From Hyaloraphidium curvatum SAG 235-1 (Eukaryota; Fungi; Monoblepharomycota), in assembly GCA_025558095.1 (NCBI GenBank), contig JAIVFI010000005.1, positions 496,001 through 560,000 on the forward strand: 64,000 nt of DNA, given 5' to 3'. Position numbers and translations under genes: made by a program. The notes under the pieces were generated by a model. The model searched no databases, had not been told where the DNA came from, and was given only the letters and a program-made list of their open reading frames with translations. Of this stretch, positions 7,045 through 56,676 are shown in pieces. Each line of letters opens with the position of its first letter. The first letter of the stretch is position 1.

Positions 7045-9875
7045 ATGGCTCCCAAGCGCAAGGAGCCCGAGCCCGCTGTGGCAAAGGGTGTGCCGGCGGG
7101 GAATTTGTCGTCCGATGAGGAGGACGCGGCGCTGGCCAGCTTGGCACTGGAGGATAGCGAGTCGGAACCCGAGCCTTGGAGCGACGAGCTCTCGGAGGAG
7201 GCTGGCTCGGAAGACGGCTCCGAATCTGCGGACGGAGAGAACGAAGTGGAATCTGATGACGCTGGGTCGTCCGCGGACGATGAGAGCGGCGACTCTTCTG
7301 ACGAGGACGGCGAGGGCTCGGACTCGGAAGGCGATGAAGGCTTGTCAGCTGGTTCCGCGGAGGAAGATGCGGAAGCAATGCCAAATGGACGGCCGTTGTC
7401 ATCGGAAGGACTCGGTGACACGGGGGACAAGGAGGCGCCCGCTGCTACTCGCCAACGAGTAAAGGTCCAACGAGGATCGTCTTCCAAGTCTGCCCGGCAG
7501 ACCGTCACGAGCGATGACGACAGGTGCGAAGTTCTTCTGCGTTAGCACCACGTGTCTCTGACGCCTTTTCTAGCGGGTACTCTTCGAAACCGGAGCGGAA
7601 AGGTTCGCTCGATACCGTCGACTCCGCGGAAGGAGAGGCCGGTGCTGTCACTGAACTGCCTTGGTGGCGCACCAACCCGGAAATCGAACCGATTTACGAG
7701 AGCGATACGTCCGACGAGGTGGGTGGAGCCTCCTTCGATCGCCAGAGAGCTGCGTCTAAGACCGGCCGCAGGAAACCGGAAACACCGTCGGCAACATTCC
7801 TTTGGAATGGTACGCGGACTATCCGCACATCGGCTACACCGTGGACGGCAAGAAGATCATGCGCCCTGCGACCGGCGATGCCTTGGACAAGTTCCTTGAC
7901 CAGATGGATGACCCCAAGAGCTGGCGGACTTTCCACGACCCCTACGAGGGCAAAGACGTGGTGCTGACGCGGGAGGAGCTGGACCTGATAAAGCGGCTCC
8001 AGGGCCAGGCTTTTGGTGATTCGTCGGTTGATCCCTTCGAGGTGCGTTTCGATTCTTTCGCAGCGCGAGGCAACCTGACCATGCCCCCATAGCCGACAAT
8101 CGAGTGGTACACCAGCAAAGTAATGGAAACTCCCCTGAACGCAGCTACGGAGCCCAAGAGGCGTTTCATTCCTTCGAAGTGGGAGGGCAAGAGGGTTGGT
8201 TGCACTCCTCGTCCTTCACTATCCGGTACTGAGGCAGCTTTCCGCAGATCATGAAGATTGTCCGCGCGATTCGAAAGGGCTGGATCGTTCCTCGCGCCGA
8301 GAAGGCTCCCAAGAAGCCCCCGGTTTACATGCTTTGGACGGACAATGATGAGGAGCGGCCGGACCACCCCATGCACGTGCCCGCGCCGAAAATGGCACCG
8401 CCGGAGCACAACGAATCGTACAACCCGCCGGCAGAGTACATCCCCACCGCCAAGGAGGTCGAGGAGTGGAACGCGGCGGATCCAGAGGACCGCCCGACCA
8501 ACTTCATCCCCAAGAAGCACAAGAACCTCCGCTCGGTCCCGGCCTACACCCGCCTCCTGAACGAGCGCTTCGAGCGCTGCCTGGACCTGTACCTCTGCCC
8601 GCGCGTGCGCAAGCAGAAGATCCAGATGGACCCCGAGGCGCTGATCCCGAAGCTGCCGGATCCCAAGGACCTGCAGCCCTTCCCCATGGTGCTCGCCATC
8701 ACATACACCGGCCACACCGGCAAGGTGCGATGCACCTCGGCGGATCCCACTGGCCGATGGCTGCTCTCGGGGTCGGACGACCGGACGGTGAGGCTCTGGG
8801 AGGTCAACACGGGGCGGTGTTGGAAGACGTGGGACGTGGAAGCCACCGTCCACTCAGTAGCATGGAACCCGAACAAGGCTCTCTCCGTTTTCGCCGCCGC
8901 CGTGTAGGTGTTTTCCTGTTGGCTCGGTTTTCGAGTTCTGACCACGCGTGACTGCGCAGCGGCGACACCGTGCTTCTGGTTGCCCCGGGGATCGAGAACG
9001 AGGCCGTGCAGACGGCATCCGAGGCGATCTTCCGGTCGGAATCGGCGGCGCCAGACGACAAGGCGGGAGTCGTGTGGGCGAAACCTTCCGAGGCCGAAAG
9101 CCGCGCCGGGATCCGGGTCGTGCTGCGGTTCTCGCGGAAGGTCAGCAGCGTGGTCTGGCACCGCAAGGGCGACTACTTTGCCGTGCTGAACCCGGACGGT
9201 AAGCCGTTCGCGTCGGTGGATCGTGCCGGCATTTGACAGTTCCACAGCTCCGAGCTCTCCAATCTCGGTGCACCAGCTTTCGAAGCGGCAATCGCAGCAC
9301 CCGTTCCGCAAGTCCAAGGGCGCCGTGCAGAAGATGCTCTTCCACCCCACGAAACCTTTCCTTTTCGTTGCGGTAGGTTGCACGGCGGACACCCGTCTTT
9401 ACTGTCTCTGAACCTCGTTGCGCAGACGCAGCGCTACGTCCGGGTCTACGACCTCATGAAGCAGGAGCTGCACAAGACGCTGATGTCCGGCGTCAAGTGG
9501 ATCTCCAGCATGGACGTCCACCCGCAGGGCGACAACGTCATCGTCGGCTCGTTCGACAAGCGCGTGTGCTGGTTCGACATGGACCTCTCCAGCAAGCCCT
9601 ACCGCGTCCTGCGGTCGCACGACAAGGCCGTGCGCGCGGTCAGCTTCCACCGGCGCTACCCGCTCTTTGCCTCGTGCAGCGACGACGGCACGGTGCAGAT
9701 CTTCCACGGCATGGTGTACAACGATCTCATGCAGAACCCCCTCATCGTGCCGGTTAAGGTGCTCCGCGGGCACGAGGTGGCGGACGACCTGGGGGTGCTG
9801 GGGTGCGAGTTCCACCCGCTGCAGCCGTGGATCTTTTCGTGCGGCGCGGACGGCACGGTGCGGTTGTTCTCGTGA
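7045..9875 (+). CDS. ERB1: Ribosome biogenesis protein Erb1/BOP1 (PeBoW complex, WD40)
   Basis: Acidic N-terminus, [45 protein letters not shown], and WD40 repeats ending [17 protein letters not shown]...[20 protein letters not shown]. Confidence 0.97.
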
Positions 9876-12045: not shown

Positions 12046-13722
12046 ATGGATGCCGGCGATGTCCCGGCGAGGACACCGCGGCGGGGGGCGGCCGGCAGCC
12101 CGTGTGACGCCTCTCGGACACGGCCGCCCGGCATGCCGCGGACGGCTTCCGGCGGCCCGCTGAACGCCCCGTGCGGCATGCCGGCAGCCTCGCGGACCCG
12201 CCGGCGCACCGCATCGGCCTTCGGCGGGTTATACGGGACGCGGTGGGCGCTGCTCGGCCTGCTGCTCGCGGCACTCCTCCTCGGCCCCGTCGGCCCGCAG
12301 CACGCGGACGCGCAGGAGGACGTGTCAAGGCGCTGGCGCAAGCAGCAGGCCCCCGCACTCGCCGCGGAGCGCCTGGGCGCGGGGCCCGCGGGGGCGTCTG
12401 CGCGCGACTCCGACAGCCGCACCGCCGTGGCCTACATCGTGCTCTGCCACGACGTCGACTCGGTGCGCGGCGCCGCGGAGCTCTTCGAGGCCCTGTACAC
12501 GTCGCCGTCGCGGACCCGCTTCTACGTGCACATCGACCTGGACGCGCCGGCCGCCGCCGTCGCCCTGCTCAAGGACGTGGTGGCGCGGTACCCGCCCGAC
12601 GTCGCGGTCATGGTGCCGAGGATAAAGGTCGGCTGGGCAGACGTCACGATGGTGGACGCGGAGCTGTCGGCCCTGCGCGCGGCCTTCGAGTCGTGGGACC
12701 GCTGGTCGCGTGCCGTGGTGCTCTCGGGCACCGCGTACCCGATAAAGTCCTCGTGCGAGCGGGAGCGCTGGCTCCGGGACACGGACCCCAGGGTCAACCT
12801 GGTGCACTACGAGAAGCTGTGGAAGATCTGCGAGTGGGGCGACCCCGGCCGCGGCGAGCACTGCAAAAAGACCCGGGCGCGGTGCGAGGACGTCGAGTGC
12901 ACCAGGATGAGCAAGACCCCCGGGAACGGCGTGGTCTACAAGGGGCCGCAGTGGGTCATGGTCTCGCGGCCCTTCAGCGAGTACGTGCTGGAGCACCCGC
13001 TGCCCCGCGCGTGGCTCGAATTTTTCCGGTCCTTCTCCGAGGGGCCGGACGAGATGTACTTCCCCACGGTGCTCATGAACGGGCCCGCCGAGTTCCGCGA
13101 GTGGGCCAGCGTGGGCACGCCGCGCGGCACGCACCGGTGGGACCGCCTGCCGCCCTTTGCGGAGCAGGAGGCCTCGGGCACCGCCGAGGTGCCCGCCGAC
13201 GCCGGCCTGCCCCCCGCGGGCGGCCACCCGCCCCACGCATCGAACCACTCCCACATCCTGCGCACGCCGGCGCTCATGTACACCCTGTGGAACTCGGCGC
13301 GCAGGCTCGGCTGCCCGTCGTACCCCTCGGACTCGCCGTGGGGGTGGAGCCCGTGCTGGCTCGGCCGGGAGGACTTCCCGGACCTGGTGCGGAGCGACAG
13401 GCAGTTTGCACGCAAGATGCGCGCGGGGGAGGGGGTCAAGCGGTGGCTGGCGGCGGTGTGGAACGCGACGTGCACGTCCGGCGGCGAGCTCGGCGCGGAT
13501 CCGGGGCCGGACCCGTTCCTGGAGGGGTTCCGCGCGGCGAGAACGCACAAGCGCGACTTGGCGGCGTCCGAGGCGGCGCTGGGGGCCTACGCGTACACGG
13601 GGATGACGGCGCTGTCGCAGCGCATGCTGCGGTACGCGCTGCTGCTCACGGCGGCGGCTGCGCAGAACATCGCGAGGTTGGGGCGCAGGCTGATGCAGGG
13701 CAGGAGGAAGGCAAAGGCATGA
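12046..13722 (+). CDS. Glycosyltransferase family 14 (core-2/I-branching or xylosyltransferase-like), intronless
   Basis: TM anchor (WALLGLLLAALLLG), then VAYIVLCH, FYVHIDLDA, VGWADVTMVDAEL, LSGTAYPIKS, KGPQWVMVSRPF, PDEMYFPTVL and FARK. Start codon uncertain (12046, 12133 or 12178). Confidence 0.85.
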   Translation: MDAGDVPARTPRRGAAGSPCDASRTRPPGMPRTASGGPLNAPCGMPAASRTRRRTASAFGGLYGTRWALLGLLLAALLLGPVGPQHADAQEDVSRRWRKQQAPALAAERLGAGPAGASARDSDSRTAVAYIVLCHDVDSVRGAAELFEALYTSPSRTRFYVHIDLDAPAAAVALLKDVVARYPPDVAVMVPRIKVGWADVTMVDAELSALRAAFESWDRWSRAVVLSGTAYPIKSSCERERWLRDTDPRVNLVHYEKLWKICEWGDPGRGEHCKKTRARCEDVECTRMSKTPGNGVVYKGPQWVMVSRPFSEYVLEHPLPRAWLEFFRSFSEGPDEMYFPTVLMNGPAEFREWASVGTPRGTHRWDRLPPFAEQEASGTAEVPADAGLPPAGGHPPHASNHSHILRTPALMYTLWNSARRLGCPSYPSDSPWGWSPCWLGREDFPDLVRSDRQFARKMRAGEGVKRWLAAVWNATCTSGGELGADPGPDPFLEGFRAARTHKRDLAASEAALGAYAYTGMTALSQRMLRYALLLTAAAAQNIARLGRRLMQGRRKAKA

Positions 13723-13814
13723 CGGGCTCTCTGCGGGACATGGCGGAGCGGACACGGACAAGGTGCGAGTGCGTGAACCATTGGAAGCGGGGCCAGGGGC
13801 TGCGGGCAATCTTG

Positions 13815-15897
13815 TCAATCTCTTTCGAAAAAGACTACCACCTCCACGAGCTTGGTCTGCGGGAAGAGGTCCACGGGCACCGCCTTGGTCATCCGGAATG
13901 GCCTTCCGGGGAACTTGTCCGCAGTCGGGCGGCAGAGGCTGGAGATTGGGGATCAGCCAGTCTTCGGATACGAGACCTCGCAGCACGCACTCGATGAAAT
14001 TGCGGGACGCTGCCGCGGGGTTGCAGGCGACGTAGACGAGCTGCTTGAGGTCCGCGCAGTTGCGGATGGCCTTGGTCACCGAGGGGTGCACGCCCTCCCG
14101 CGGCGGATCCAGGACTGCGACCACCTTCTCCCCGCCCTTGAGCTTCCCAAACACCCCCGCGAGCGCGTCCTCGACCCTGGCGCAGATGTACTCCACATCC
14201 TCGCCCTCGCGGAGCCCGTTGACCTCGGCATTGATCGCGGCGTCCCGCACCGCGTCCGCCGACAGCTCCACCCCGACGATCCTGCGCGCGACCTTGGCCA
14301 TCGTGAGCCCGATCGTGCCCGTGCCGCAGCAGAGGTCCAGCAGGGTGGTGTCCCGGTCGGGCGAGAGGCCGCACCACTCGCGGACGATGCCGTACAGCTT
14401 CTCCGTCGCCGGCGTGTTGACCTGGAAAAAGGCGTTGGGGCTCACGCGGAACCTGAGGGCCCGAGTCAGCCAGCTCCGCGGGCCCATGCGACGGGCAGAC
14501 GAACCGGAGCCCGCAGAGATCCTCGTGCACGTATCCGTCGCCGATGAGGTCCACGAGGGGCTCCTTGTCCGTGAACCCGTTGAACACGCCGTCCCACTCC
14601 TGCCACATGAGCGACTTGAGCTCCACCTCGCCGGCCGATATCTTGCGCTCGAAAAACTCGGCGAGCAGGCGCTTTTCCTCGTCGAGGCGCTCGCGCGACA
14701 TGCCGCTGGGGTTGATCTGCACGATGGCCTGGTCTGCGAGCAAAGCGGGTCAGCGAGGGCCGCGACGACGATGCCGCGAGATGCGCACTTTCTCCGGACC
14801 AGAACGTCTTGACGACGAGCAGGCGCCACGTTCCGGTCTTGTCGATCCGGTCGTAAGCCTTCCACTCGTGCCCGTCGGCATACTCTTGCATCACGCTGCG
14901 TATGCGCAGGGCGGCCTCGGAAACGTGGAGGCACTCGGAGGCATCCTGTCAGCATAGGTCGATGAGCGTTCGAAAGCGATCGCGGCGTGCCAATACTCGC
15001 CAGAACAGCGGTGTACCCGTCCTTGACCAATCCGAGGAGAAAGCCCAGAGTCTGCTTGCCCCAGGGGTCGACGCCGAACGAAAACTCGCACTTGGTGCGG
15101 TAGTGCGTCTCGATCGGGGAGGGAACAATGTCCAAAAGCGGGCACGGAAGCCCACTGGCGACCAACACGCCGTCGTCCAACCACTGCATCGTGGATGCGC
15201 CCGCCGGGGCCAATTCCTTCAGCGATTTACGCACGCCGACGAGGACATCGCGGGCGACTTTGGTCTTTTCCGCCAGCTGCTGCGCGTACGGCATTCGCCA
15301 CAGCGGGGTCACCTGGTCCGCGAGGCGTTCCTGCGGAGTCCGCGAATCGTCCGGGGCCGCTTCGTTGCGGCTCTTCTTCATGCCCCGCCGCCCTCGCTGT
15401 GCGTTCCCGGTTCCGTTGGCGTTCGGCCTCCACGTGTCGTCGATGCTCTCCAGCTGGACCTGCTGGCCCTTCACGGAGACGTCGGCGAGCTTCTCCATCG
15501 CCCGGTCCCGATCCTCCTTGGACTTGAACGTCACGAAGGCATAGTTCCACTTCTTTGCCTTTTTGACCCGCGAGAGTTCGAAGCCGGCGCAGGCTGCCCG
15601 CACGTCTTGCTCGCTGGCCTTCGTAGGGAGGTTCCTCATTTGGATTTGGTAGCTGACACCCCCGGCACCTCCAGCTGACGCATCGGCATTGTTTGCAGGC
15701 TCAGTGTCCGCCTGATTAGGCCCGTCCGGTTCCGTTTCGTCGTGTTCCAGAGCTTCTTCCTCGCCGCCCTGTTCGACGTCCCCCGAACTGTCCATTCGGC
15801 GCTTCGTGTTGTCCGGATCCGGAAGCTTTCCTTCCGAATCGATTTCCACTTCTTCTATCGGTCTTTTCTTGGAGCCGAGCTCTGTATCCGGCTCCAT
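13815..15897 (-). CDS. TRM2: tRNA (uracil-5-)-methyltransferase TRMT2A/Trm2 with RRM
   Basis: RRM (KWNYAFVTF), DQVTPLWRMPYAQQL, YRTKCEFSFG, FRVSPNAFFQVNT, LLDLCCGTGTIG, AVLDPPREG, LVYVACNP and VDLFPQT..VE. Confidence 0.95.
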
Positions 15898-15975
15898 GTT
15901 GTGTGTTGACGACGGCGTCGGGAGCCGAACAGCAGTCGCAAAAGCGGCCCGAGCTTCGTGTCCTTTTCGAGGCCG

Positions 15976-17868
15976 ATGTATCGACAGGAGCCGTACGACC
16001 GCGGCCGCGAAGAGCGGCGGTACAGCGATGCGCCGCCGGAACGCCGGCAGAGCGACGTCTACGGCTCGAGGAACGAGGCGTACGCTCATCGGCGGCCGGA
16101 GGAGGACCGCCGGCACTACGACGCGCCGCAACAGCGCTACGACTCGGGCTACACTTCGAGGCAGGAATACGACGATTTTTCCAGGAACTTCGGCGACCGG
16201 CGAGGCTACCACGCCGAACGAGGGGACGGCTACGCCGACGGGCGCAGCTTGGACGGGCGGAGAAACGACGCTTACGCGGCCCAGCCCCACCATTCGTCCT
16301 CGAGAAGAAGCGATTACGATGACAGAAGGAACGAATGGGACGGCCGGCATGTTTCCGGTGGTCGGTGGCCCGCCGAAGGCTCGGGTCGGGACCATTACGG
16401 CTACCAGCGAGAGAGCGAGGACCGGCGCTTGAGCTACGACTCGCGCCCGCGGACGGACTCTGTTGCCTTGGACTATGACAGAGGGAGGTCGGGCTATGGC
16501 GATCTGCAAAGTCGGCGACCGTCGAGCTACGACTCGGGGAGATCCTACCATGGATCTGCGACGAGCCGTGATCGAGGCGAGCGCAGCCAAAGCTACGGAG
16601 CGCGGCAAGAGTTCCGAAAAGAGTCTCCCCCTTCCGCAAGAGGGCAGTCGCGGGACAGGGGAGGAGCGTCTCACCACTGGCAGCAACCACATGACGCACA
16701 CAGATCCTACGAACGAAGGGACAGACGTTCGCTTTCACCGAGAGGGCGCGCCGCCTATGATGCTACGCGACATGACTCCAGGGACGATTTGCGCGCCGGA
16801 TCTTACGCGCGCGGAGGGCCGGATGGGTACGAGCACCGCGGGCCCCAACCAGACAGATCGAACGAAGACCGATCGTGGCCGGAGGGGCGCGGCAGAGCAG
16901 GCTACGAAGACGATTATCGTCCACGTGAACGAACGGCGCAAGGAACCTCATACTCGAACGGATCCGGGAGCTACGATGACCGCGGCGAGCCGCCGCCGCG
17001 GCCCGAGGAATCCTCCTCTCCGGCCGATGCATCCGCGGATCTTGCGAACGTAAGCGCACAGGAGCTTCTGATGCAGCTGCTGTCCGCGGAGGACGGTGGC
17101 GAGTCTGTGCCGGAAGATCAGGCCCGGCCTCAGTACGAAACCTACACAATGAAGCCTGAACTCGACGGCAAGAAACCGTCGTTCCGGGACATGGACCCCT
17201 TGGTTCTGCCGGAAGGCGTCTCGGCGGAGAAGGCGGCCAAGCTGCGGCAAGCGCATCAGTCAAGGCTCCTGCAGTCCGAGCTCCACCGAAAGAGAGAGAA
17301 CGAAAGGGACCAAACGAAGACTCAATCTAGGAAGGTGACTGCGTGTCGCTTTGAGCTGAACGGACGCTGCACGAGCGGCTCGGATTGTGAATGGTCGCAT
17401 GACCCGGACGTCCTCGCGGAAGCCCGCCGAGCAAACGAGCGGCTGCCGGATGTGTGCAAGTACTTCAAAGTTGGGAGCTGCAACCGTGGAGCGGAGTGCG
17501 AATTCAGCCACGAGCTGAAGCACGAACCTTGCAAGTTCTACCACTGGTTCGGGCGGTGCAAGGGCGGCGACAAGTGCGACTTCTCGCACGCGCCGTTGAA
17601 CGAGCGGCAGCAGCAATGGGTGCAGAACCAGATGAAGAAGAGGCTCAAAGCCCAGGCATGCCGCTTTTATGCCGCGGGCAAGTGCAAAAAGTCGGATGAG
17701 GACTGCGCCTTTTCCCATGAACCTCTTACGCCCGAGCAAGCTGTTCGCCTGCAGAGGGACCTCGAGGAGGAAAGGCGTCGTGCTTGGAAGGAGGGACAGA
17801 GGAGGGCAGGGGTCGTTAAATCGGAGCCCCGGCCGGAGGAACAGGTACCCTTTGTTCCCGGCCTCTAA
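15976..17868 (+). CDS. CCCH zinc-finger protein (four C-x7/8-C-x5/6-C-x3-H fingers) with R/D/Y/S-rich low-complexity N-terminus, intronless
   Basis: CRFELNGRCTSGSDCEWSH, CKYFKVGSCNRGAECEFSH, CKFYHWFGRCKGGDKCDFSH and CRFYAAGKCKKSDEDCAFSH. Confidence 0.88.
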   Translation: MYRQEPYDRGREERRYSDAPPERRQSDVYGSRNEAYAHRRPEEDRRHYDAPQQRYDSGYTSRQEYDDFSRNFGDRRGYHAERGDGYADGRSLDGRRNDAYAAQPHHSSSRRSDYDDRRNEWDGRHVSGGRWPAEGSGRDHYGYQRESEDRRLSYDSRPRTDSVALDYDRGRSGYGDLQSRRPSSYDSGRSYHGSATSRDRGERSQSYGARQEFRKESPPSARGQSRDRGGASHHWQQPHDAHRSYERRDRRSLSPRGRAAYDATRHDSRDDLRAGSYARGGPDGYEHRGPQPDRSNEDRSWPEGRGRAGYEDDYRPRERTAQGTSYSNGSGSYDDRGEPPPRPEESSSPADASADLANVSAQELLMQLLSAEDGGESVPEDQARPQYETYTMKPELDGKKPSFRDMDPLVLPEGVSAEKAAKLRQAHQSRLLQSELHRKRENERDQTKTQSRKVTACRFELNGRCTSGSDCEWSHDPDVLAEARRANERLPDVCKYFKVGSCNRGAECEFSHELKHEPCKFYHWFGRCKGGDKCDFSHAPLNERQQQWVQNQMKKRLKAQACRFYAAGKCKKSDEDCAFSHEPLTPEQAVRLQRDLEEERRRAWKEGQRRAGVVKSEPRPEEQVPFVPGL

Positions 17869-47943: not shown

Positions 47944-48048
47944 GTTTACAGCACGACGGGTGGCGTCGATCACGGGCTTCGTCTCGGTGAGTCGCACACA
48001 TCGCCTCTGCTACTAGCTGTTGCTAGAAAATCCGCCGGCAGCGCCCCA

Positions 48049-51000
48049 ATGCCAGTGGCCTTGGCATCTCCATCTGCAAACTCTGCGCCTCGGGCTTCTT
48101 CACAACTACCTGTGCCCCGGACGCCAATGTTGGTGGACGGCCCCGCCATCGCAACTCGGCTCAAGCAGACTGGGAAGCTGAGCTCGGCGGAGATTTCTGC
48201 GTCGTTGGGAGTACATCGCACGACCTATTTTCGTTGGATCAAGTGGGCATCGCTGCCCCCGGCATCGAGAGAGGGAGTTCGCAAGGTCCGGAGCCGCCGC
48301 AAGGTCACGGACCAGATGGTCCAGGACATCGTACACGAGGCAAAAAGCCAGGTCAGGGTCACCCAGCAGGAGCTAGTTCTTTTTCTGGCAGAAAAGTACG
48401 GGATCCGCGTCTCCCAGCAGCACGTTTCGCGGCTGCTGAAGGCAAATGGCGTCACTAGGAAGAGGCTCACCGTCAAGTCTTCCGAGGCCTTACGGCAACC
48501 GGAAAGGCATCTTCTGTTTCATAGTCGCATCGAGAATGTGCCTATGGAACGCATGGTCGCACTGGACGAAACGGCTTTCGAGCTCAACGACCCGGGCAGC
48601 CACGGGTACTCGGACCGCGGAAGCCGCGCTGTTGTCTACCTCCCGCGGAATAGAGGTCCAAAGGTGACTCTGTGTCTCGCAGTGTCACCAAGTCCTCGTC
48701 CGGGAGCAGTTGCTGGAACGGTGATCTCGTATGTGATCTACCGTGGCAATATGAACACGGAGCGATTCTGCGCTTTCTTGAGGTCTGTTAAGGCAGACGG
48801 ACAGGGCCCCAAGAACGCGCTGAACATTGTGATTGACAATGCTGGTTACCATGGATCCCCTTTGAGGGCAAAGAAGACCGCAAATGGTACTGCGATTGTA
48901 GAGAACACCTCCGGCAAATCGTTCCTCGCGGTTCAGGCGGTGGCGAAAGCCAACAACCTCAACCTCGTGTACCTGCGACCCCGTACTCCCGAGTTCAATG
49001 CGAGTGAGCACGTGATAGGGCGGTTGAAGCGCCTTGTCCGGCGAGACTGTCCCTCCACTGTGGCCGATCTGATTGACGCTGTCGAGAGGGCGATACGAAT
49101 TGTTGGGGAGAGCGATCTCTGTCCCACTTTTCGGCACTGCATCAAGCTCAGCGCGGAAGAGAAGGCGCGCATTCAGCGGGAGATGCTTCGGTCCGACAAC
49201 CTTGGTTCCACGAGCGGGTGCATACAACCGGAAACGGCAACTGGCGAGATCACGGGAGACACAAACTCGACCCGCATGGACACCGGATCGGGTCCCGGGG
49301 CCGCGCCCAGGAACGCGGTGGACGACGGCATCGCTGCTCGAGAAGCGGCCCGCCTGCTGCAGGAGGTGGGGAACTCGTCGCCGTCGTCATTGACGCGTGC
49401 CGACCTCCGTTTGACTTCCCAGGCCCGGGAACTCGGAGTGGCCGAGGTCGACGTCCACAAGGCCTACGATGTGAACCAGCTCTATGGCCGACTACGAGGA
49501 CTCAGTAATGGAGGTGCTTTCGGATCGGCGTGGAACACGTTTCTGGACGAGCTGCAGAACGCCCGCGCCACCGCCTCCAAGGACGTCATCGGCACCCTCA
49601 CCTCCCTCCCTCCCGACCAGTTCCGCGGAATATGCTCCGCAGTCGAGAAAGGCAAAGGCAAGGAGGTCCGCGCGGCCCTCTGCCGGAAGCTGCGGAACTT
49701 CGTCGAGCGACGTCGGCTCCCCGCGCCCGTCGCCGACGAACCATCGCCGGCCACTGCGGGCACCCCTTCCGGCCTCTCGCCGCCTCCGCCGCTCTTTCCA
49801 ACTGTTTTAGCGAACCCGATTTTCGCTCCAGCCGTTGTCGGAGCCCCGGGGGCGCAGCTGGACGCTCTGCTGGACTACGCTCTGGAGCCGACCGTGCCCA
49901 AGGACCTGCGTGAGGCTGTCAAGTACGCGTGCTGTGCCGGGCTTTCCGACCTGGACCAGGGTCGTCCGGACGGCAGTTACTCGTCCCTCTCCGCGACGAG
50001 GAAGGAACGACTTTTTGTCTCGCGCCTGGTGGCGGTCGACCGTGAAGGAGGCTTCCACCGCTGGACGGCAGCGACCGAGATCCGTCTGCGTGGGCGGCTG
50101 ATGGCGAGTGATGCGGCTCGTTTGGATGATTTCGTCCATTCCGTATTCCTTGCTCGAGTGCGGCACTTCGTTCGCCAGCCGGAAGCCGGGCTCATACCCG
50201 TGGAGGACTTCGAGCTCCCAGCCCAGACCCACCTCCGCCGGCCGCAGAACTGGCGCAAGATCCTGGAGGACGCCCTCGGCGCGCTCAAGAACGCGTCCGG
50301 GAAAGCCCTGTGGGATCGGAGGAGTCGTTCGCTCGAGGTTGCGCTCGCCAGCCTGACTCTGGAAGAGCGCATGGCGCTCGTTGTCCGCACGGACTTGCCC
50401 AAGGACATTGCCTTTCAGCAGGCTGAACAGCGCCGCATCTTCTTCGAAACCTTCCTCTGGGGCCCCATGAAGGCCAACGAGGCGCTCCTGGGCATACCGG
50501 ATCGTGGTCCGGTGCCCGCGCTGGTGAGCAACGTTCTGGCTTCCAGCTCCAGCATTCTGGGCTGACGGTGCACTCCTCGCAGCCGCTGACCTTCTACGAG
50601 ATCTTCCAGCCCACGAAGGGGTTAAGAGGCGTGAGCGAAAGGGCGGACGCGGACCTCGGCTCGTTCTTCGACAAGGCTTTGGCTGCTGTGCACGGAGAGG
50701 AGGGGCGCTCGGTCCTGTTTGAGTTGATCTTTTCTGGCCACCCGATGCGCGACCATTTGCTGGACTATTGGGGGTTCGATTCGCTCGTGAACCCTGTCAG
50801 CGACGCCGCCCGTCGCGCGAGCGTCGCGTTCCACCTGAAGTTGGACGCGCTCGAAAAGGCCTTTGACGCCAAGCGCGTCGACATCTGTTCCCTCGGATGC
50901 CTTTATTGTCCCTTCACAGTGGCGGTCGAGGGCCGGGTGCCGGCTCGGAACCCGGAGCGGAAGAGAAAGGACGCGAACGGCGCTACGGCCGGCAAGTCGT

Positions 51001-51167
51001 CGGATCAGCGCCAGTACGACGCTGGCGTGCGGCTCGGGCATCACGTCGCGGGGAAGCACTTTACGTGCCAGATCTGCCGCAAAGACGGCAGGCGTGTCAC
51101 GTTTGCGTTCGAGGCCAAGTACCGGGAACACGTGGAAACCCAGCATGCAGATGCTCCTCTCCAGTAG
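48049..51167 (+). CDS. IS630/Tc1-mariner DDE transposase with long C-terminal extension and C2H2 zinc fingers (exons 48049-50523, 50583-51167; ~1019 aa)
   Basis: Two HTH motifs (SAEISASLGVHRTTYFRW; TQQELVLFLAEKYGIRVSQQHVSRLLKANGVTRKR) and triad LDET (D 48565), IDNAGYH (D 48835), YLRPRTPEFNASE (E 49006). A phase-0 intron 50524-50582 (GTGAGC..CTGAC..CAG) joins the ORF with CLYC..HH..H and CQIC..H..H fingers. Confidence 0.9.
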
Positions 51168-51344
51168 GTCTCCGCAAGAGATCCACACGGGGTCATTACT
51201 CATCCTCGCTGTCCCAGCCTCGTCATCCCCCGGGCCTTCACATCACGGCGCGGACTGCTGCTCGCCCAGGTCAACTACATTGTGCCGCACGCCTGCCGCA
51301 CTCAAGCAACGGAAGCGGAGAGTGCTGCCGCCGGAGCAACGGCG

Positions 51345-54300
51345 ATGGACGTAGACGGGGCGAAGGACGAAGGTTGCGCGGCAAAGGAGCCCAGGTGCCA
51401 CCTCTGCCTGTCGACAACCCGGGGACACCGGCGAGGATGCCGGCCGGCTTTGCGGCAAGCTGCGGAGAATGCGTACAAGGCCGTCGGGGATGCGGAGCAC
51501 GAGCGGCACGTGACCGAGCGCGCCATGTCGACAACCTGGTTCTTGCCCGAGGAGGCCCTCCACCCCTGGGCGATCGAGCCGCTCAAGAGCGTGGGGCTGC
51601 TCATTTCCCGCGCCGCAACCGGTGCGGCGTCCTTTGCAAAGCTCGTCTGGACCTCGGCGATGCTGGCAGTATACAACGGTCTGCTGGACAACCGCTCCGT
51701 TCCCCCTGCCATCCTGCGCAAGTTCCCACCTTCCGTCGTAGCGAACATGGCGATGCGGGTGGTTTTGAACGAGGGGGCGCTAAACGCCAACGCAGGCACA
51801 CGCCGGAGGAAGAAGCCGCGCGGGGACATCGGCACGGATCCGGGCGTGGAGATCACCGCAACTGGCGCGGGACTCGGCACGGTCACGGAAATGGCGGAGG
51901 ACGATGACGAGCCCGCTGCCGAAGATGGGGAAGAAGAAGAGGAGGGCGGAGATTTCGGTGAATACGCCGGGTTCGCGGACTTCCTGGCCGGCGAGGGGGA
52001 AGCCGACGGACCTGAACACGTGCTGGAAGCTCTGGGCGCCGGCTTCGGTGGCGACGGGATGGCCGACGACGGCGAGGCTTTTGACGGTCCCGGCACCCTC
52101 TCCGTGGAGGAGCATAACGCGGCGGCTGCGGTTCTGCGGGCGGTAGTCACCGACGCCTACCACGAGCTGAGGCCGGACCTGGCTTCCGAGTTTGCCGACT
52201 GGCACCACTACCTGCTGCGCGGCCCGCTGCTCGGTTACTTCAGGAATCTTGCCGCAGGACGCCTCCGCACCGTCCCCATCCAGCTGCGCAAGGAGCTTTC
52301 GGACCTGATCCGCACCTTCCTGAAGGAGGAGCTGGACAACGCCGTGAAGCGGCAAAAGATTGGCCACATCTTGCGCTGCGTGCTGGCCAAGCTCGGGACG
52401 GGTGATACGAACTTTTTCGGCACCAGCTTCGCGGCCTTTGGCTGCAGCCCCGAGTTTGACGCGGAGGCTCGGCTTCGCCTGACCTGGCTACTCCTGCCGC
52501 TATCCGGACGCTCGCTGAATACGATCATGGACCTGCGGGAGCCCCGCGACCGGCCAAAATGGCCAGCGACTGTCCTACAGCGCGTGATGCTTTCGCTGAG
52601 GAAGCGGGACGTGGAGCTGAAGCGGTCGGCGATGGCGACGCGTATCCGCAGCGTCGCCATATCGCCGCAGAAGGCGCGCGGCAAGTCGCAGGACGAGGAG
52701 GACGCAAAGGCGGCGTACCTGCTGGATCTGCGCGACCGGGCCCAAGCCGAGCTCCGCCGGATGCCGCCTGAAGCGATCAGGCAACTGCAGGAGGAGGAGC
52801 GGCACGAACTGGTCGAGACGTATGTGGCTGACAAGCTGCAGTTGCGTGGCATCCCCGTCGAGATCCCCTCCGTGCAGGGGGTTGGCATCCACCCCACAAA
52901 GAGCCGCTTTTGGGGGCCGGAGTGGACGGAGGGCCTGGACAAGGAGGCGCTGTTGCAGCGCTACGAGAGGGAGCTGCTCGATGAGAGGCAGAGGGCGCGT
53001 CAGCTGAGCACAGCTGAACTTCGCCTCGCGCAGACGGGCAAATGCGCGGACGCGGACGCGTTTGGCTCCGAGGCTCTCTTTCAGACTATGCGGCTGCGGG
53101 AGGAGCAGATCGCGAGGCTCAAGATGCGGCGATCGTCAAGCGTTGCCTCGACCGGATCTGAACCAAGCCCGACGGCCTTGCCGCAAAGCTCGACACCGAC
53201 ACCTTCATCATCGAGTGCGGCGGACAGCGCTCGGCGCGTCGCCGCCAGCTTCACCACCGAGGCCGCAATGGACGTTGACCCTGCGAACGAGGCGGAGGGT
53301 GGTGGACCCTCTGCGACTCTGTTCCGCGGAAGTGCCGCCGTGGACCTGCTTTGCGCGGACATGGAATGCTCCGACTCGGAAGACGGCAATGTTGAGGCTG
53401 CTGACGACTTCCCCACGATCGGCGGCGGGAAGCAGAAGTCGAAAAAGGGCCGACCGATCCGAGTGGACCCCAAGCCGTGGCCGAAGAACGGGGCACCCAA
53501 GCGATTCCATGGCTACGTCACGACGGGGAAGAAGCGGGCGCCGCTGTCGCCCGAGGGCAAGGTGAAGAAGCGATTGGGGAAGTCACGTGTGGCGGCTCGC
53601 CGATGGTCCAGCGCGGCCGGAGGGAGCGGGGAGAAGAGCGTGGGTGACGCGTTCTCTCCCGTGGTGAGGTCGTCATTCTGATACGTTTCATGAACAACAG
53701 CAGTCAAGGACCCAAGGCGGCACCACCGGAGGGACCTGGGCCGCGGGCGGGATCCGGCCGCTCTTGACCAGGACTTCCCTCACCCCCATAGCCCTGTACA
53801 TAACCGCGAGCGATCTGCCCGACCTCTTCAAGATGCTCGGTGTTAAGCTCGGCCCCTTGGCACCGGACGTGGCCAAGATCAACCCCGATTACCTGTTTGG
53901 ACACCTGTTCAACAATGGCAACAAAATTGTTCAGGACGAGCGTCTTTTCCGCCTCCATCAGGAGGGGAAGCGCTCCCCGGCAGGGCACGCGGACGCCTCA
54001 CGGCCGACCCTTCGCCGGTCGGGCGATGCGCTGCACTGCTCGTGCATTGCTGGCATGGTTCTTCGTGGCCCAACCTTTGCCATTGTCGAGGAGCACATGG
54101 CCGTCGTGCCCAGGGCTTCGAAGCCGAAGGCACCGCAGCAGCAGTGGACGGAATCTGAGCCCAAAGTGACGCCGCCCTTGGATTGTAGGTCCCCGTTCTT
54201 TCATCGGAGCTTCCGCGCCTAACCTGCTTCCCAACAGTCTTCCTCAGCGCGCCATCGCCCGAGCCGTGTTGGGAGTGTACGGAGCCAGAACAGCACGCCC

Positions 54301-56630
54301 ACTGGCACGACTTTTCGGCCCAAGATTCGTTCGGGATGCCCGCGGTCCTCGTGCCCACCCTTCCGCACGGTGCTCCGGACCCCCCGCCGGGCATGGCCGT
54401 CGTTGATGGTATGTCATCCTTGCCGCTGCACTCAGCGCTGCTGATGTGTTCATCTTCAAGCTCACGGCTGGCTCCATGCTGGCGGGACCGTCTTCTTCCC
54501 CCCGCCCGCCATTACCGACGATGCCGAGCACTTGCTGGTAGATCCCGACTCGACTCCTTTCACGTGGATGGACGTGGATCAGGATTGGATCGGGCTCCCG
54601 CCTCCCGCCTCCATCCCCCCCGAACCCCCACCCGCAACATCACCGAACTCCTCCACATCGGTACCTTCCGAGTCTCCATCCTCCTTCACTCCCACCCTCG
54701 CTCCTCCGCCTCCTCTTCCCATCCCGACGGCCTCGCCTGTGGGTGCCGCAGGATCTTCTCCGCTTCCGCCCTCTTCTCCACCTGCCCCTGCTCAGCCTCC
54801 AACCTCCGCTCCTCTCCCACCGCACCCTCGCTCTACGTGCTCATCGATACCTCGTCCGCCTGTTGACTGGAAGACCTCTATACCGTGCTACAACTTTAGC
54901 CGGAAGGCGGACGCGGAGAAGCTAATGCCGCACTTCCTAACAATGGCAACGGAAGAGGAGATGTGGGATGCCGCCCAACGGGGCCTTCCCGTTTCTGGTG
55001 GCGTTGTCTTTTGCGATCCAAATCGCTGGTTCTATATGCAGGGCGGTCGACGACTTGCACCCGCGTTTGTGGCCCGCTGCCTGGACCCCGGCCCGGGGAG
55101 ACGGTTCGACTTCGCAAACACCCACCTACCCGAGCTTTCGGAGAAGATCGTCGTCACCAACCCGGACGGCACCACATCGACATACATTCTTGTGCGCGCC
55201 AACGTGCCCAAGGGGTGCATCTCTGCGGGCCGCATCAAGGACATCCGGCTCGAACACTCCTGCGACGAGACGGCCCGCGTTGCGCGGGCGACGCAGGCGG
55301 CGCCGCGCAACATCCGCTGCCGACACCACCCGGACGGCGCCGCCAAGCTCTCGGCTCACCGCCCGACCAACCGCGGGCATGCGAACCGCGACGAGAAGCT
55401 GCGGAAGGCCGAACGGAACTGGACGCTTTTCCCCAACCCCGACGGCGGGTCCGATGCCGACGGGGACAGGTTCTGGGGTGGTATCGCCGGCTTTGGGCGC
55501 GCCGGCGTCCGCCAGCTTCCGGAGCTCATTCTCGGCGTGCCTGGGGACCTCGATCGCCGGATGTGTGGTTACCAGCACGCTTCTAGGAAACTGGCGTCGC
55601 TGCGCAAGTCGCACACCCTCCCCTCCGGCCTGACAATCGAGGCTTGGGAATCGGCACTGCCTTCGCAGCGGACGACGAGCTGCGAGCAGTTTCGCAAGTA
55701 CGCCCATGCCATCACGAAGGAGCTCTGCTCCGTCGTCAAGTTCTACTGCAATGATGAGATATGGTTTGTTCACGGCCAGCCTGCGTGATTGGGATGCAGC
55801 CTTCCTGACGCCTTCTTTTGCAGCCGCGACCGCGTCCGTACCATCCGGAGGCGTCGGCAGGTGCTCGACTGGATCGCCCGCGACCTGTGTCGCAACCCGT
55901 ACTCGGGCAAGTTCGATTCCCAGACCACCTTCGCCTATGGCGCCGCCCGCTTTGGTCACGCAAGCAAGGGCGGTCCGGCTTCTCGGATTGTGCAGTTCAG
56001 GGCCGCGCTCGCGGCCGTTGGAATCCTCGTTTTGATCAACGAGTACCTGACGAGCCAGATGTGTTCAAAGTGAGTTTTCCCTCGTACTTCGCGCCTGATT
56101 TCGCGGCATTGATCGCCCTCTCGGCAGGTGCCTGACGACCTACGTTGTCCCCATCACCAACCCCGGGTGCCGTGGCGAGATCCGGGGCGCCAAGTACTGC
56201 CCGACCTGTCGCACGTACTGGATGAGGGACGTCAACAGCTGTCGGTCCATCGGGTACCTGTTCTGGTTCGCGATCGCTACCGGTGGCGAGCGCCCCTGGC
56301 CGTTCAAGCCTGACACCAGGAGGCGCAAGCCGTCGAAGCCGGCCGCGAAGTCCGCTGGTACGCTGATTTTGCTCGCTTTGGAGCGTGTGAGCTGATGGCG
56401 TTGCAGGCACCACTCTTCAGACCGGATCCGTTCCCACCGTGCCCAAGCGTCCTGGTGCGGTGGCGCGGGGACGCGGCTCTGCCAAGAAGGTCAGGCTGGA
56501 CGGCCCCGGCCGTGGGTCTTCTTATCTTTCTTCTCTACAAATTGGCGGGTGGTGCGAGCCCTCGCCTGTGCCCGATTGTGGGCTTGATCGAGGTGGAGTC
56601 CGAGAGGACCGCCTTTTTGGTGGCAAGTAG
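51345..56630 (+). CDS. Fanzor (Fanzor1-like, TnpB/Cas12 homolog) RNA-guided endonuclease, intron-split, ~1650 aa from the first ATG
   Basis: Predicted exons 51345-53639, 53701-54184, 54238-54408, 54461-55763, 55824-56069, 56128-56357 and 56407-56630 keep frame through GT-AG introns of 49-61 nt. RuvC-I CLDPG (D 55084); FY..R.R..RQVLDWIARDL; AYGAARFG..GGP; RuvC-II INEYLTSQMCSK|C (E 56041); CPTC; RuvC-III WMRDVNS..SIG (D 56228); terminal RPWPF. The stop is 56395 if the last intron is retained. Confidence 0.88.
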
Positions 56631-56645
56631 CATTCCATATGTGTG
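56510..56645 (+). ncRNA. Candidate Fanzor omegaRNA scaffold
   Basis: Hairpin GGCGGGTGGT-GCGA-GCCCTCGCC (56544-56566) and hairpin AGGTG(GA)GTCC-GAGA-GGACCGCCT (56591-56614) both have GNRA loops, with GCCC-N6-GGGC (56570-56583) between them. They lie at the Fanzor 3' end, where TnpB/Fanzor omegaRNAs are encoded. Boundaries are approximate. Confidence 0.6.
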
Positions 56646-56676
56646 TAGCCAGGTCGACGTCCAACTTGAGACCGGA

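Follow-up and report, generated by a model that had tools for sequence, protein, structure and literature searches.

What is encoded where a transposase frame and a Fanzor nuclease frame lie on one strand, in the same register, with a single stop codon between them? This question is raised by a locus of the fungus Hyaloraphidium curvatum SAG 235-1, studied here within a window of 64,000 nucleotides (nt), which is the whole stretch analysed (assembly GCA_025558095.1, contig JAIVFI010000005.1, positions 496,001 to 560,000 of the forward strand; coordinates below count from the first letter of the window). The locus is a mobile element of 8.66 kb on the plus strand at 47989-56652, termed family A, which is present in five copies that are >99.8% identical and whose identity stops at the element ends. 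The reading we prefer, with a probability of about 0.78, is that it holds the single gene of an autonomous and recently active DNA transposon, in which one spliced mRNA encodes one protein of ~2,650-2,711 amino acids (aa) that begins with two helix-turn-helix (HTH) motifs and a DDE transposase core and ends in a RuvC nuclease.

Fanzors located in or next to transposons have been described by Bao & Jurka 2013 (PMC3627910), Saito 2023 (PMC10432273), Jiang 2023 (PMC10530073), Yoon 2023 (PMC10711439) and in a 2026 OMEGA review (PMC13565253), and are also treated in the preprint of Jiang 2023 and in a 2025 engineering preprint. In this literature they are separate genes riding in transposons, with Mariner/Tc1 elements encoding the transposase and the Fanzor as separate proteins (PMC3627910). 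A limited search of the Fanzor literature, which is no proof of absence, found no natural fusion of a DDE transposase to a Fanzor, whereas here the two enzymes are naturally joined in one spliced and expressed gene.

A stop codon within an intron

In the list of open reading frames (ORFs) those at 50568-51167 and 51282-53681 share one frame, the sole separator being a single TAG. This triplet (51165-51167) lies inside a splice donor, CA|GTAGGT, that starts at 51164, and an acceptor, CCCAG, ends at 51217, which gives intron 2 as an interval of 54 nt (51164-51217) in phase 2. All five family-A copies have the TAG and show no difference from one another over the 601 nt around the junction. Removal of the interval leaves the open frame ...ADAPLH|LVIPRAFT... 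running into the Fanzor ORF, and the first downstream ATG (51345) follows the TAG by 177 nt. A first-pass annotation of this DNA had proposed the stop within the donor, the acceptor, the open frame, the 177-nt spacing and the reuse of GTAGGT as the donor of intron 4 at 54185; all of these are exact in the sequence, and the last is also seen as a transcript joint.

Evidence that the intron is removed comes from the only public RNA run that contains this DNA (X1), in the form of assembled contigs, which were compared over 50200-56150 and which give no strand, transcript starts or ends, full-length molecules or rare isoforms. The exact joint 51163|51218, a GT..AG joint that skips the 54 nt, is carried by these contigs, and all seven of the predicted introns tested within this range are excised with GT..AG joints. 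One contig of 6,636 nt covers 50200-50522, 50582-51163 and 51218-52020, that is part of exon 1, the whole of exon 2 and the first 803 nt of exon 3, and neither intron 1 nor intron 2 is left in it. As all five genomic copies contain the intron intervals, run X1 represents spliced RNA, and the joining of the transposase and Fanzor frames in one mRNA by splicing is supported by it. The frame is open from the ATG at 48049 through the seven joints to 56393, which gives 2,649 aa, and the additional removal of a predicted intron 8 extends it to a TAG at 56628, giving 8,136 nt and 2,711 aa; the nine exons first put forward, of 8136 nt and 2711 aa, do sum to this length, with 2,711 codons plus the stop. 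Since the TAG is the triplet at positions +2 to +4 of the donor and is gone in the spliced RNA, the fused protein, known here from spliced RNA and frame, would be the main product and possibly the sole one.

The 6,636-nt contig also reaches 4,928 nt upstream of 50200, which would be ~2.7 kb past the 5' end of the element if exon 1 is intron-free. This overhang could be read-through from a host gene flanking one copy, or an assembly join.

The earlier proposal of a splice-controlled fusion is supported as far as the joining of two frames in one mRNA is concerned, but finds no support in its second part, which made the intron a switch. Under such a switch the splicing of intron 2 would give the fusion, its retention would give a transposase-only form ending at TAG 51165, and the ratio of the two would control activity. 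The stop does come directly after exon 2, so a retained form would end cleanly behind the zinc fingers, the length of the intron can be divided by three in family A (54) as well as in its homologue in a diverged family B (66), and the family-A intron lacks a CTRAY branch motif and has only TACTCAT, CTRAY being readable in six of the seven other introns (intron 3 is also without it). However, two lengths divisible by three are a 1-in-9 coincidence, the homologue in family B contains a perfect branch site, CTGAC, and contig depth within 51164-51217 is zero, the same as within intron 1. No intron-2-retaining contig was seen among the X1 contigs, although rare retained forms could escape contig assembly.

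Nor does the stop require a special device. A phase-2 intron with a GTRAGT donor always has an in-frame TAG, TGA or TAA at +2 to +4, so that the stop follows automatically from phase and donor. The same property is found in intron 7, in the family-B homologue of intron 2 and in an unrelated intron, at a different position, of the locus Cc on contig C2; a single stop between long same-frame ORFs is the usual appearance of an ordinary phase-2 intron in this genome. Given that only the spliced form is present in the contigs and that the intron is an ordinary one, its retention as a control that makes transposase alone is unlikely.

The same layout in a diverged family

Family B comprises ten copies of ~8.63 kb (for example C6:418175-426805), of which five were compared and are 99.7-99.8% identical, with termini that read T[C/A]GTTTCACACAC...GAGTGTAGCTA. 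Of its copies at least one (C35) carries an in-frame TAG together with an unusual 5' end.

Family B is collinear with exons 1-4 and 6-8 of family A at 33-81% protein identity, with 33% in exon 3, 41% in exon 4, 42-45% in exon 6 and 81% in exon 7, and introns 1, 2, 6 and 7 have the same position and phase in both families. Its homologue of intron 2 is at the same place, is 66 nt long and in phase 2, and reads GTGAGT...CTGAC...ACAG, with a TGA at donor +2 to +4 beyond which the frame continues. On this alignment the fused layout and intron 2 are kept in the diverged family, and whether related copies keep frame across the spacer, which the first-pass annotation had left to be seen, can be answered in that the five family-A copies and family B all do so.

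The comparison also bears on whether two separate proteins might be made, the transposase from an unspliced or 3'-truncated mRNA and the Fanzor from a transcript of its own starting at ATG 51345, with the spliced junction a minor by-product. Such an arrangement would resemble the published elements that carry both genes, an ATG does lie shortly behind the TAG, and transcript starts are not visible in the contigs. Yet the similarity between the A and B proteins spans the end of exon 2, with its two C2H2-like fingers, and exon 3 from its first residue (LV.PR..T...G...A..YIVP), and so precedes the first ATG after the junction, by 42 codons in family A (where it is residue 43) and by 81 in family B (residue 82). 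Because the similarity lies upstream of the first ATG in both families, translation has to enter from exon 2. Furthermore, a conserved zinc-finger cluster straddles the junction, nothing but the 54-nt intron separates the halves and the spliced form is the sole form assembled, all of which makes two separate proteins very unlikely.

Domains along the predicted protein

The coding sequence of the single gene would occupy almost the whole element, as it begins 60 nt inside the 5' end (47989) and finishes 22 nt short of the 3' end (56652). Exon 1 (48049-50523) begins with the ATG and contains the HTH-HTH part, an IS630-type DDE core and then ~475 aa without a family match. The core spans aa 36-350 (48154-49098) and scores 112.9 bits with the NCBIfam model transpos_IS630 (cut-off 100), over model positions 6-296 of 299, and 46.9 bits with Pfam DDE_3 (cut-off 28.6; E 3.4e-12); HTH models also match exon 1, and a comparison of the core with PDB sequences gave no meaningful match. 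The acidic residues of ALDE, IDNAG and NASE are present and kept in family B and are presumably the catalytic D-D-E, with a D-to-E spacing of 56 (DD56E) that is unusually long. These profile matches assign the N-terminus to the IS630/Tc1-mariner superfamily of transposases. The label of Tc1/mariner given at first needs qualifying, in that the IS630 model is passed but the target-site duplications do not follow it, being 2 bp as expected of IS630/Tc1/mariner and never TA.

Beyond exon 1 the introns up to intron 7 are all defined by GT..AG joints in the contigs. Intron 1 (50524-50582, 59 nt, phase 0) is followed by exon 2 (50583-51163), which is set by frame and peptide and ends in the two C2H2-like zinc fingers, the finger residues being kept in family B. 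After intron 2, exon 3 (51218-53639, 807 aa) has a C2HC-like motif and then a long region, and its identity to family B extends over 653 aa. Intron 3 (53640-53700, 61 nt, phase 0), exon 4 (53701-54184), intron 4 (54185-54237, 53 nt), exon 5 (54238-54408) and intron 5 (54409-54460, 52 nt) then lead to the nuclease part, with joints on both sides of exons 4 and 5. This middle region of ~1,500 aa has three zinc-finger-like motifs and is conserved between families A and B, and its relatives are found only in this genome; exon 3 had no match among 1.84 billion representative proteins, and Pfam none in exons 2-8.

Exon 6 (54461-55763) contains a proline-rich linker and the Fanzor core with the putative RuvC-I aspartate in DPNR (codon 55015-55017). 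Intron 6 (55764-55823, 60 nt, phase 2) separates it from exon 7 (55824-56069), which contains a conserved G...INE-Y-L-T-S-Q-M-C-S-K segment, aligned across four families and with the glutamate codon at 56041-56043, and the first half of a predicted zinc ribbon. Behind intron 7 (56070-56127, 58 nt, phase 2), the donor of which is GTGAGT with an in-frame TGA, exon 8 (56128-56357) continues with CPTC and then W-M-R-D-V-N-S, which would supply the RuvC-III aspartate (codon 56228-56230). Intron 8 (56358-56406, 49 nt, GTACGC..TTGCAG, with a branch-like GCTGATG) and exon 9 (56407-56630) are predictions from the sequence, the frame otherwise stopping at 56393; exon 9 is an open frame with a nuclear localisation signal-like KRPGAVARGRGSAKKVRLD and a TAG at 56628-56630.

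Exons 6, 7 and 8 align in order with Cc, a 686-aa intron-free paralogue on contig C2, at BLASTP values of 2e-29, with DPNR aligned, 7e-10 and, against its PF07282 part, 8e-13. This paralogue passes PF07282 (Cas12f1-like TNB), has weak matches to TnpB models of NCBIfam and has TranC/Cas12f as its best PDB matches. The scores for PF07282 are 31-36 bits in the C2 paralogues, above the cut-off of 26.3, and 22.6 bits in family B, below it, and the window exons do not match the model even at E = 10. DPNR, G...[NH]E.x[TS]S..C, C..C and W.RD[VI]NS are kept in four out of four families. For Fanzor and TnpB proteins Bao & Jurka 2013 (PMC3627910) gave the motif D-X(125-275)-[TS][TS]-X-X-C4 zinc finger-X(5-50)-RD; its parts are present here in order as DPNR ... 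INEYLTSQMCSKC ... CPTC-RTYWM-RD, with a D-to-TS spacing that exceeds the published range. It is on account of the ordered alignment with a PF07282-positive paralogue and of the kept motifs that the C-terminus can, with moderate confidence, be called a divergent, giant Fanzor-type nuclease.

Other searches with this part were of little help. Neither exon 6 nor the Fanzor ORF of the C2 paralogue had a match in an index of 5.8 billion proteins, exon 6 had no meaningful match among PDB sequences, a four-family profile found in the PDB a single weak match to TranC at the RD motif (E 0.14), and a feature search of the ESM Atlas with exon 6 returned scores of 0.77, which are uninformative.

Copies, ends and target-site duplications

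The copies were counted in a GC-rich genome of 32 Mb in 55 contigs. The five copies of family A (the window copy and those designated C36, C25, C16 and C4) have unrelated flanks and end in TAGTCGCACACAT (GA.. in the window copy) and ..ATGTGTGTAGCCA(G), which form an imperfect inverted repeat of only 13 nt with 9/13 positions matching, the figure for family B being 8/11. A 2-bp target-site duplication is found in each of the ten copies of families A and B that were examined, directly in eight, whilst the window copy and C16 need one extra 3' G that is common to that subfamily. The duplications are CC, CT, CG, GT and AC in family A and AC, CC, TG, CG and GC in family B; in the window it is the matching dinucleotide GT at 47987-47988 that is repeated at 56653-56654. 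Duplications of 3, 4 and 5 bp were rejected. The element is therefore multi-copy and mobile, with 2-bp target duplications. No solo ends or short derivatives of family A were found in the genome.

Some variation is seen between copies. The first base of the element is T, G or A depending on the copy, and among the family-A copies there are eight synonymous and seven non-synonymous single-nucleotide differences. Copies that are otherwise near-identical differ by small deletions within the 30-60 nt next to the 5' end (window 48021-48048), consisting in family A of a 9-bp indel and a larger deletion that removes the ATG of C4, and in family B of 6 and 22 bp, which may be due to imprecise repair at that end. 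An in-frame 5' fusion to host genes was considered and rejected, there being a stop right at the junction in two copies.

These data leave little room for a decaying or domesticated locus, in which a transposase ORF killed by a nonsense mutation would sit beside a Fanzor relic, or an immobile host gene would remain. The terminal repeats are indeed short and imperfect, and copy C4 is without the ATG and shows an insertion of 1 bp at 54098. But the supposed nonsense mutation is shared by all five copies and removed by splicing, the gene is transcribed, the catalytic residues are intact in both halves, and >99.8% identical copies lie at different sites with fresh 2-bp duplications, so that decay or domestication is scarcely credible. 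With 15 near-identical copies in two families, the single-gene element appears to be still moving.

Insertion beside a sequence motif

The landing sites are non-random. In the window a flanking motif, GCGTCGATCAC (47963-47973, plus strand), lies outside the element and 13 nt upstream of the duplication and is a likely determinant of the target site. On the element strand GCGTCGATC(AC) is upstream of all five family-A copies, its core being exact in four of the five with one mismatch in C36, and motif and duplication are 16 nt apart in three copies, 13 nt apart in the window copy and 1 nt apart in C16. With a frequency of the 9-mer of ~3 per 128 kb of strand, four such placements would be expected by chance at ~1e-12. 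The genome contains 79 instances of the 11-mer, compared with 6 of a reversed control; that the motif might be a piece of a host repeat was rejected, as 20 other sites share no wider consensus. The motif GTCGATCAC is like the element's own terminus, GTCGCACAC, at 7/9 positions. Family B has a weaker positional signal, A-R-G-G-R-N-Y-T-T at -32 to -24, with a z of about 3.2.

It could be asked whether the Fanzor half aims insertion by means of an element-encoded RNA, as a single-chain eukaryotic counterpart of CRISPR-associated transposons (CAST). The two activities are covalently linked, and the family-A copies all lie in one orientation downstream of the motif, with the weaker family-B signal ~30 nt upstream. 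Nevertheless, the stretch of 13-16 nt that separates the motif from the insertion point is completely different from copy to copy, and when exact matches were compared with those of control 32-mers, a flank-derived or internal guide for target choice had to be rejected, since the best were of ≤9 nt to the 3' flanks of other copies and ≤10 nt to the element itself, with a control mean of 9.6. The differing sequences, together with the lack of any match above controls, favour protein-mediated aiming over an RNA guide, and a fixed 11-bp motif fits recognition by an HTH or zinc-finger protein at least equally well. Moreover, the RuvC triad is intact, unlike that of the nuclease-dead Cas12k, and a 21-nt block common to families A and B cannot explain motifs that are family-specific. 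Aiming by RNA is for these reasons regarded as improbable, and the suggestion in the first-pass annotation that this is a candidate for RNA-guided transposition amounts to speculation, its longest exact guide-like matches of 9-10 nt being those of controls.

A possible mechanism and related systems

If the element is a single gene, as we prefer, the fusion may be a way for a compact eukaryotic transposon to deliver transposase and nuclease from one promoter and at a fixed 1:1 ratio. A protein module, either the HTH or the zinc fingers, might aim integration ~16 bp downstream of GCGTCGATC. Together with an RNA derived from the element's 3' end, the nuclease might cut the emptied or homologous site, with repair restoring the element, as in the 'homing' model of TnpB/OMEGA systems. 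A closer coupling can also be envisaged, in which the Fanzor half and the 3'-end RNA help to choose or prepare the integration site, or cut the donor or homologous site anew, in a state of tethering to the transpososome. This seems doubtful; if true, it would make the element a natural single-polypeptide, nuclease-coupled and site-directed eukaryotic DNA inserter, with the family-specific motif as a footprint of its targeting.

Several points weigh against the single-gene reading or narrow what can be drawn from it. At 50622, 51757 and 52078, where the window copy is unique, the junction-spanning contigs agree with the other four copies, so the RNA proves the splicing for family A and not necessarily for the window copy. 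No X1 contig spans the whole 8.1-kb coding sequence, the RNA being assembled contigs of a single run, and the predicted intron 8 lies beyond the range compared with RNA. The Fanzor part of the window has no direct match in Pfam, the PDB or protein databases, its D-to-TS spacing of 324 is larger than the published 125-275, and an AlphaFold2 model of the nuclease part of the C2 paralogue from a 9-row alignment was unusable (pLDDT 44.5). The 3'-terminal 200 nt (56452-56651) are the expected place of a Fanzor guide RNA (omegaRNA), as a candidate only, and contain a block conserved between A and B; apart from this block they gave no omegaRNA signal, the folding energy being no better than that of shuffles (z of -0.67, and -0.48 in family B). 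Lastly, the homing and co-delivery scheme above is wholly our inference.

The nearest known relatives in organisation are the Fanzor1-carrying Tc1/mariner elements PGv-1 and PUl-1 (PMC3627910) and elements of the Mariner/Tc1-associated Fanzor1c clade (PMC10530073), which likewise have a DDE transposase of the IS630/Tc1/mariner superfamily and a Fanzor/TnpB nuclease on one transposon, with the nuclease ORF running nearly to the 3' end. They encode separate proteins and have TA duplications, whereas the present element is one spliced gene for ~2,700 aa, with ~1,500 aa between the halves, has non-TA duplications of 2 bp and inserts beside a specific motif. The prokaryotic elements IS200/IS605 and IS607, with TnpA and TnpB-omegaRNA, also combine a transposase with a RuvC nuclease of the TnpB superfamily, and it is from these OMEGA systems that the proposed homing role is borrowed. 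They differ in having two genes, an HUH or serine transposase and no target duplication, in contrast to an element that is eukaryotic, intron-split and DDE-based, with a single polypeptide and an omegaRNA that is a candidate only.

In type V-K CAST (Cas12k, TnsB/TnsC/TniQ) a TnpB-derived module is similarly tied to a DDE transposase, and insertion occurs in one orientation at a set distance from the recognised site. There the proteins are separate, Cas12k is nuclease-dead and the target is chosen through guide pairing, whereas the present element has intact RuvC residues and gave no guide-target match. A protein-bound sequence can fix insertion a short distance to one side of itself, as with Tn7 TnsD at attTn7, and insertion sequences such as IS30 target sequences resembling their own inverted repeats. 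Family-A insertions, near a motif that resembles the element's own terminus, are similar, with the HTH, the C2H2/C2HC fingers or the Fanzor part as the putative binding module.

With both catalytic centres apparently intact, the element is a system in which to ask whether a cut-and-paste transposon gains in persistence or in aim from RNA-guided cutting, which of its parts recognises the target motif, and whether a eukaryotic one-protein 'cut, guide and insert' machine is reprogrammable. It also has a bearing on surveys, since in intron- and GC-rich genomes a stop between same-frame ORFs is often a phase-2 intron, and surveys of Fanzors based on ORFs or short gene models would therefore miss such fusions.

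Other loci and neighbouring genes

Two single loci on contig C2 (394500-409500 and 423500-438500) have an IS630-like core that is followed, on the same strand and ~7 kb further downstream, by a Fanzor ORF. One of them has open frames of 1,374 and 691 aa in the same frame, which are split by a TGA in a 48-nt GTGAGT..CAG phase-2 intron at a position different from that of family-A intron 2. The two loci share 92% DNA identity that is limited to the 1-kb transposase core and differ elsewhere, which is the 'chimeric' pattern of Bao & Jurka.

Further PF07282-like matches are at C5:336026, C14:724943, C12:33579, C15:378576 and C23:297326, and further IS630-like transposase genes at C5:421533, C23:314192, C13:321446 and C15:359125, none of them in the pairing described here. 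The genome seems to be rich in Fanzor-type elements.

Within predicted exon 9 a block of 21 nt, GCTTGATCGAGGTGGAGTCCG (56583-56603), is identical in families A and B though the surrounding coding sequence has diverged, and in family A a small hairpin of the GNRA type comes after it. The block may act as a cis site or belong to the scaffold of a guide RNA.

Among the host genes near the element are an exon of ERB1/BOP1 (BOP1NT and WD40 domains) at 8251-8904 on the plus strand of the window and, at 12328-16701 on the minus strand, a long ORF in which a tRNA (uracil-5)-methyltransferase domain is encoded. A search of the ESM Atlas with an ERB1 exon told no more than that the genome is eukaryotic, and such neighbours place the element in a eukaryotic chromosome.

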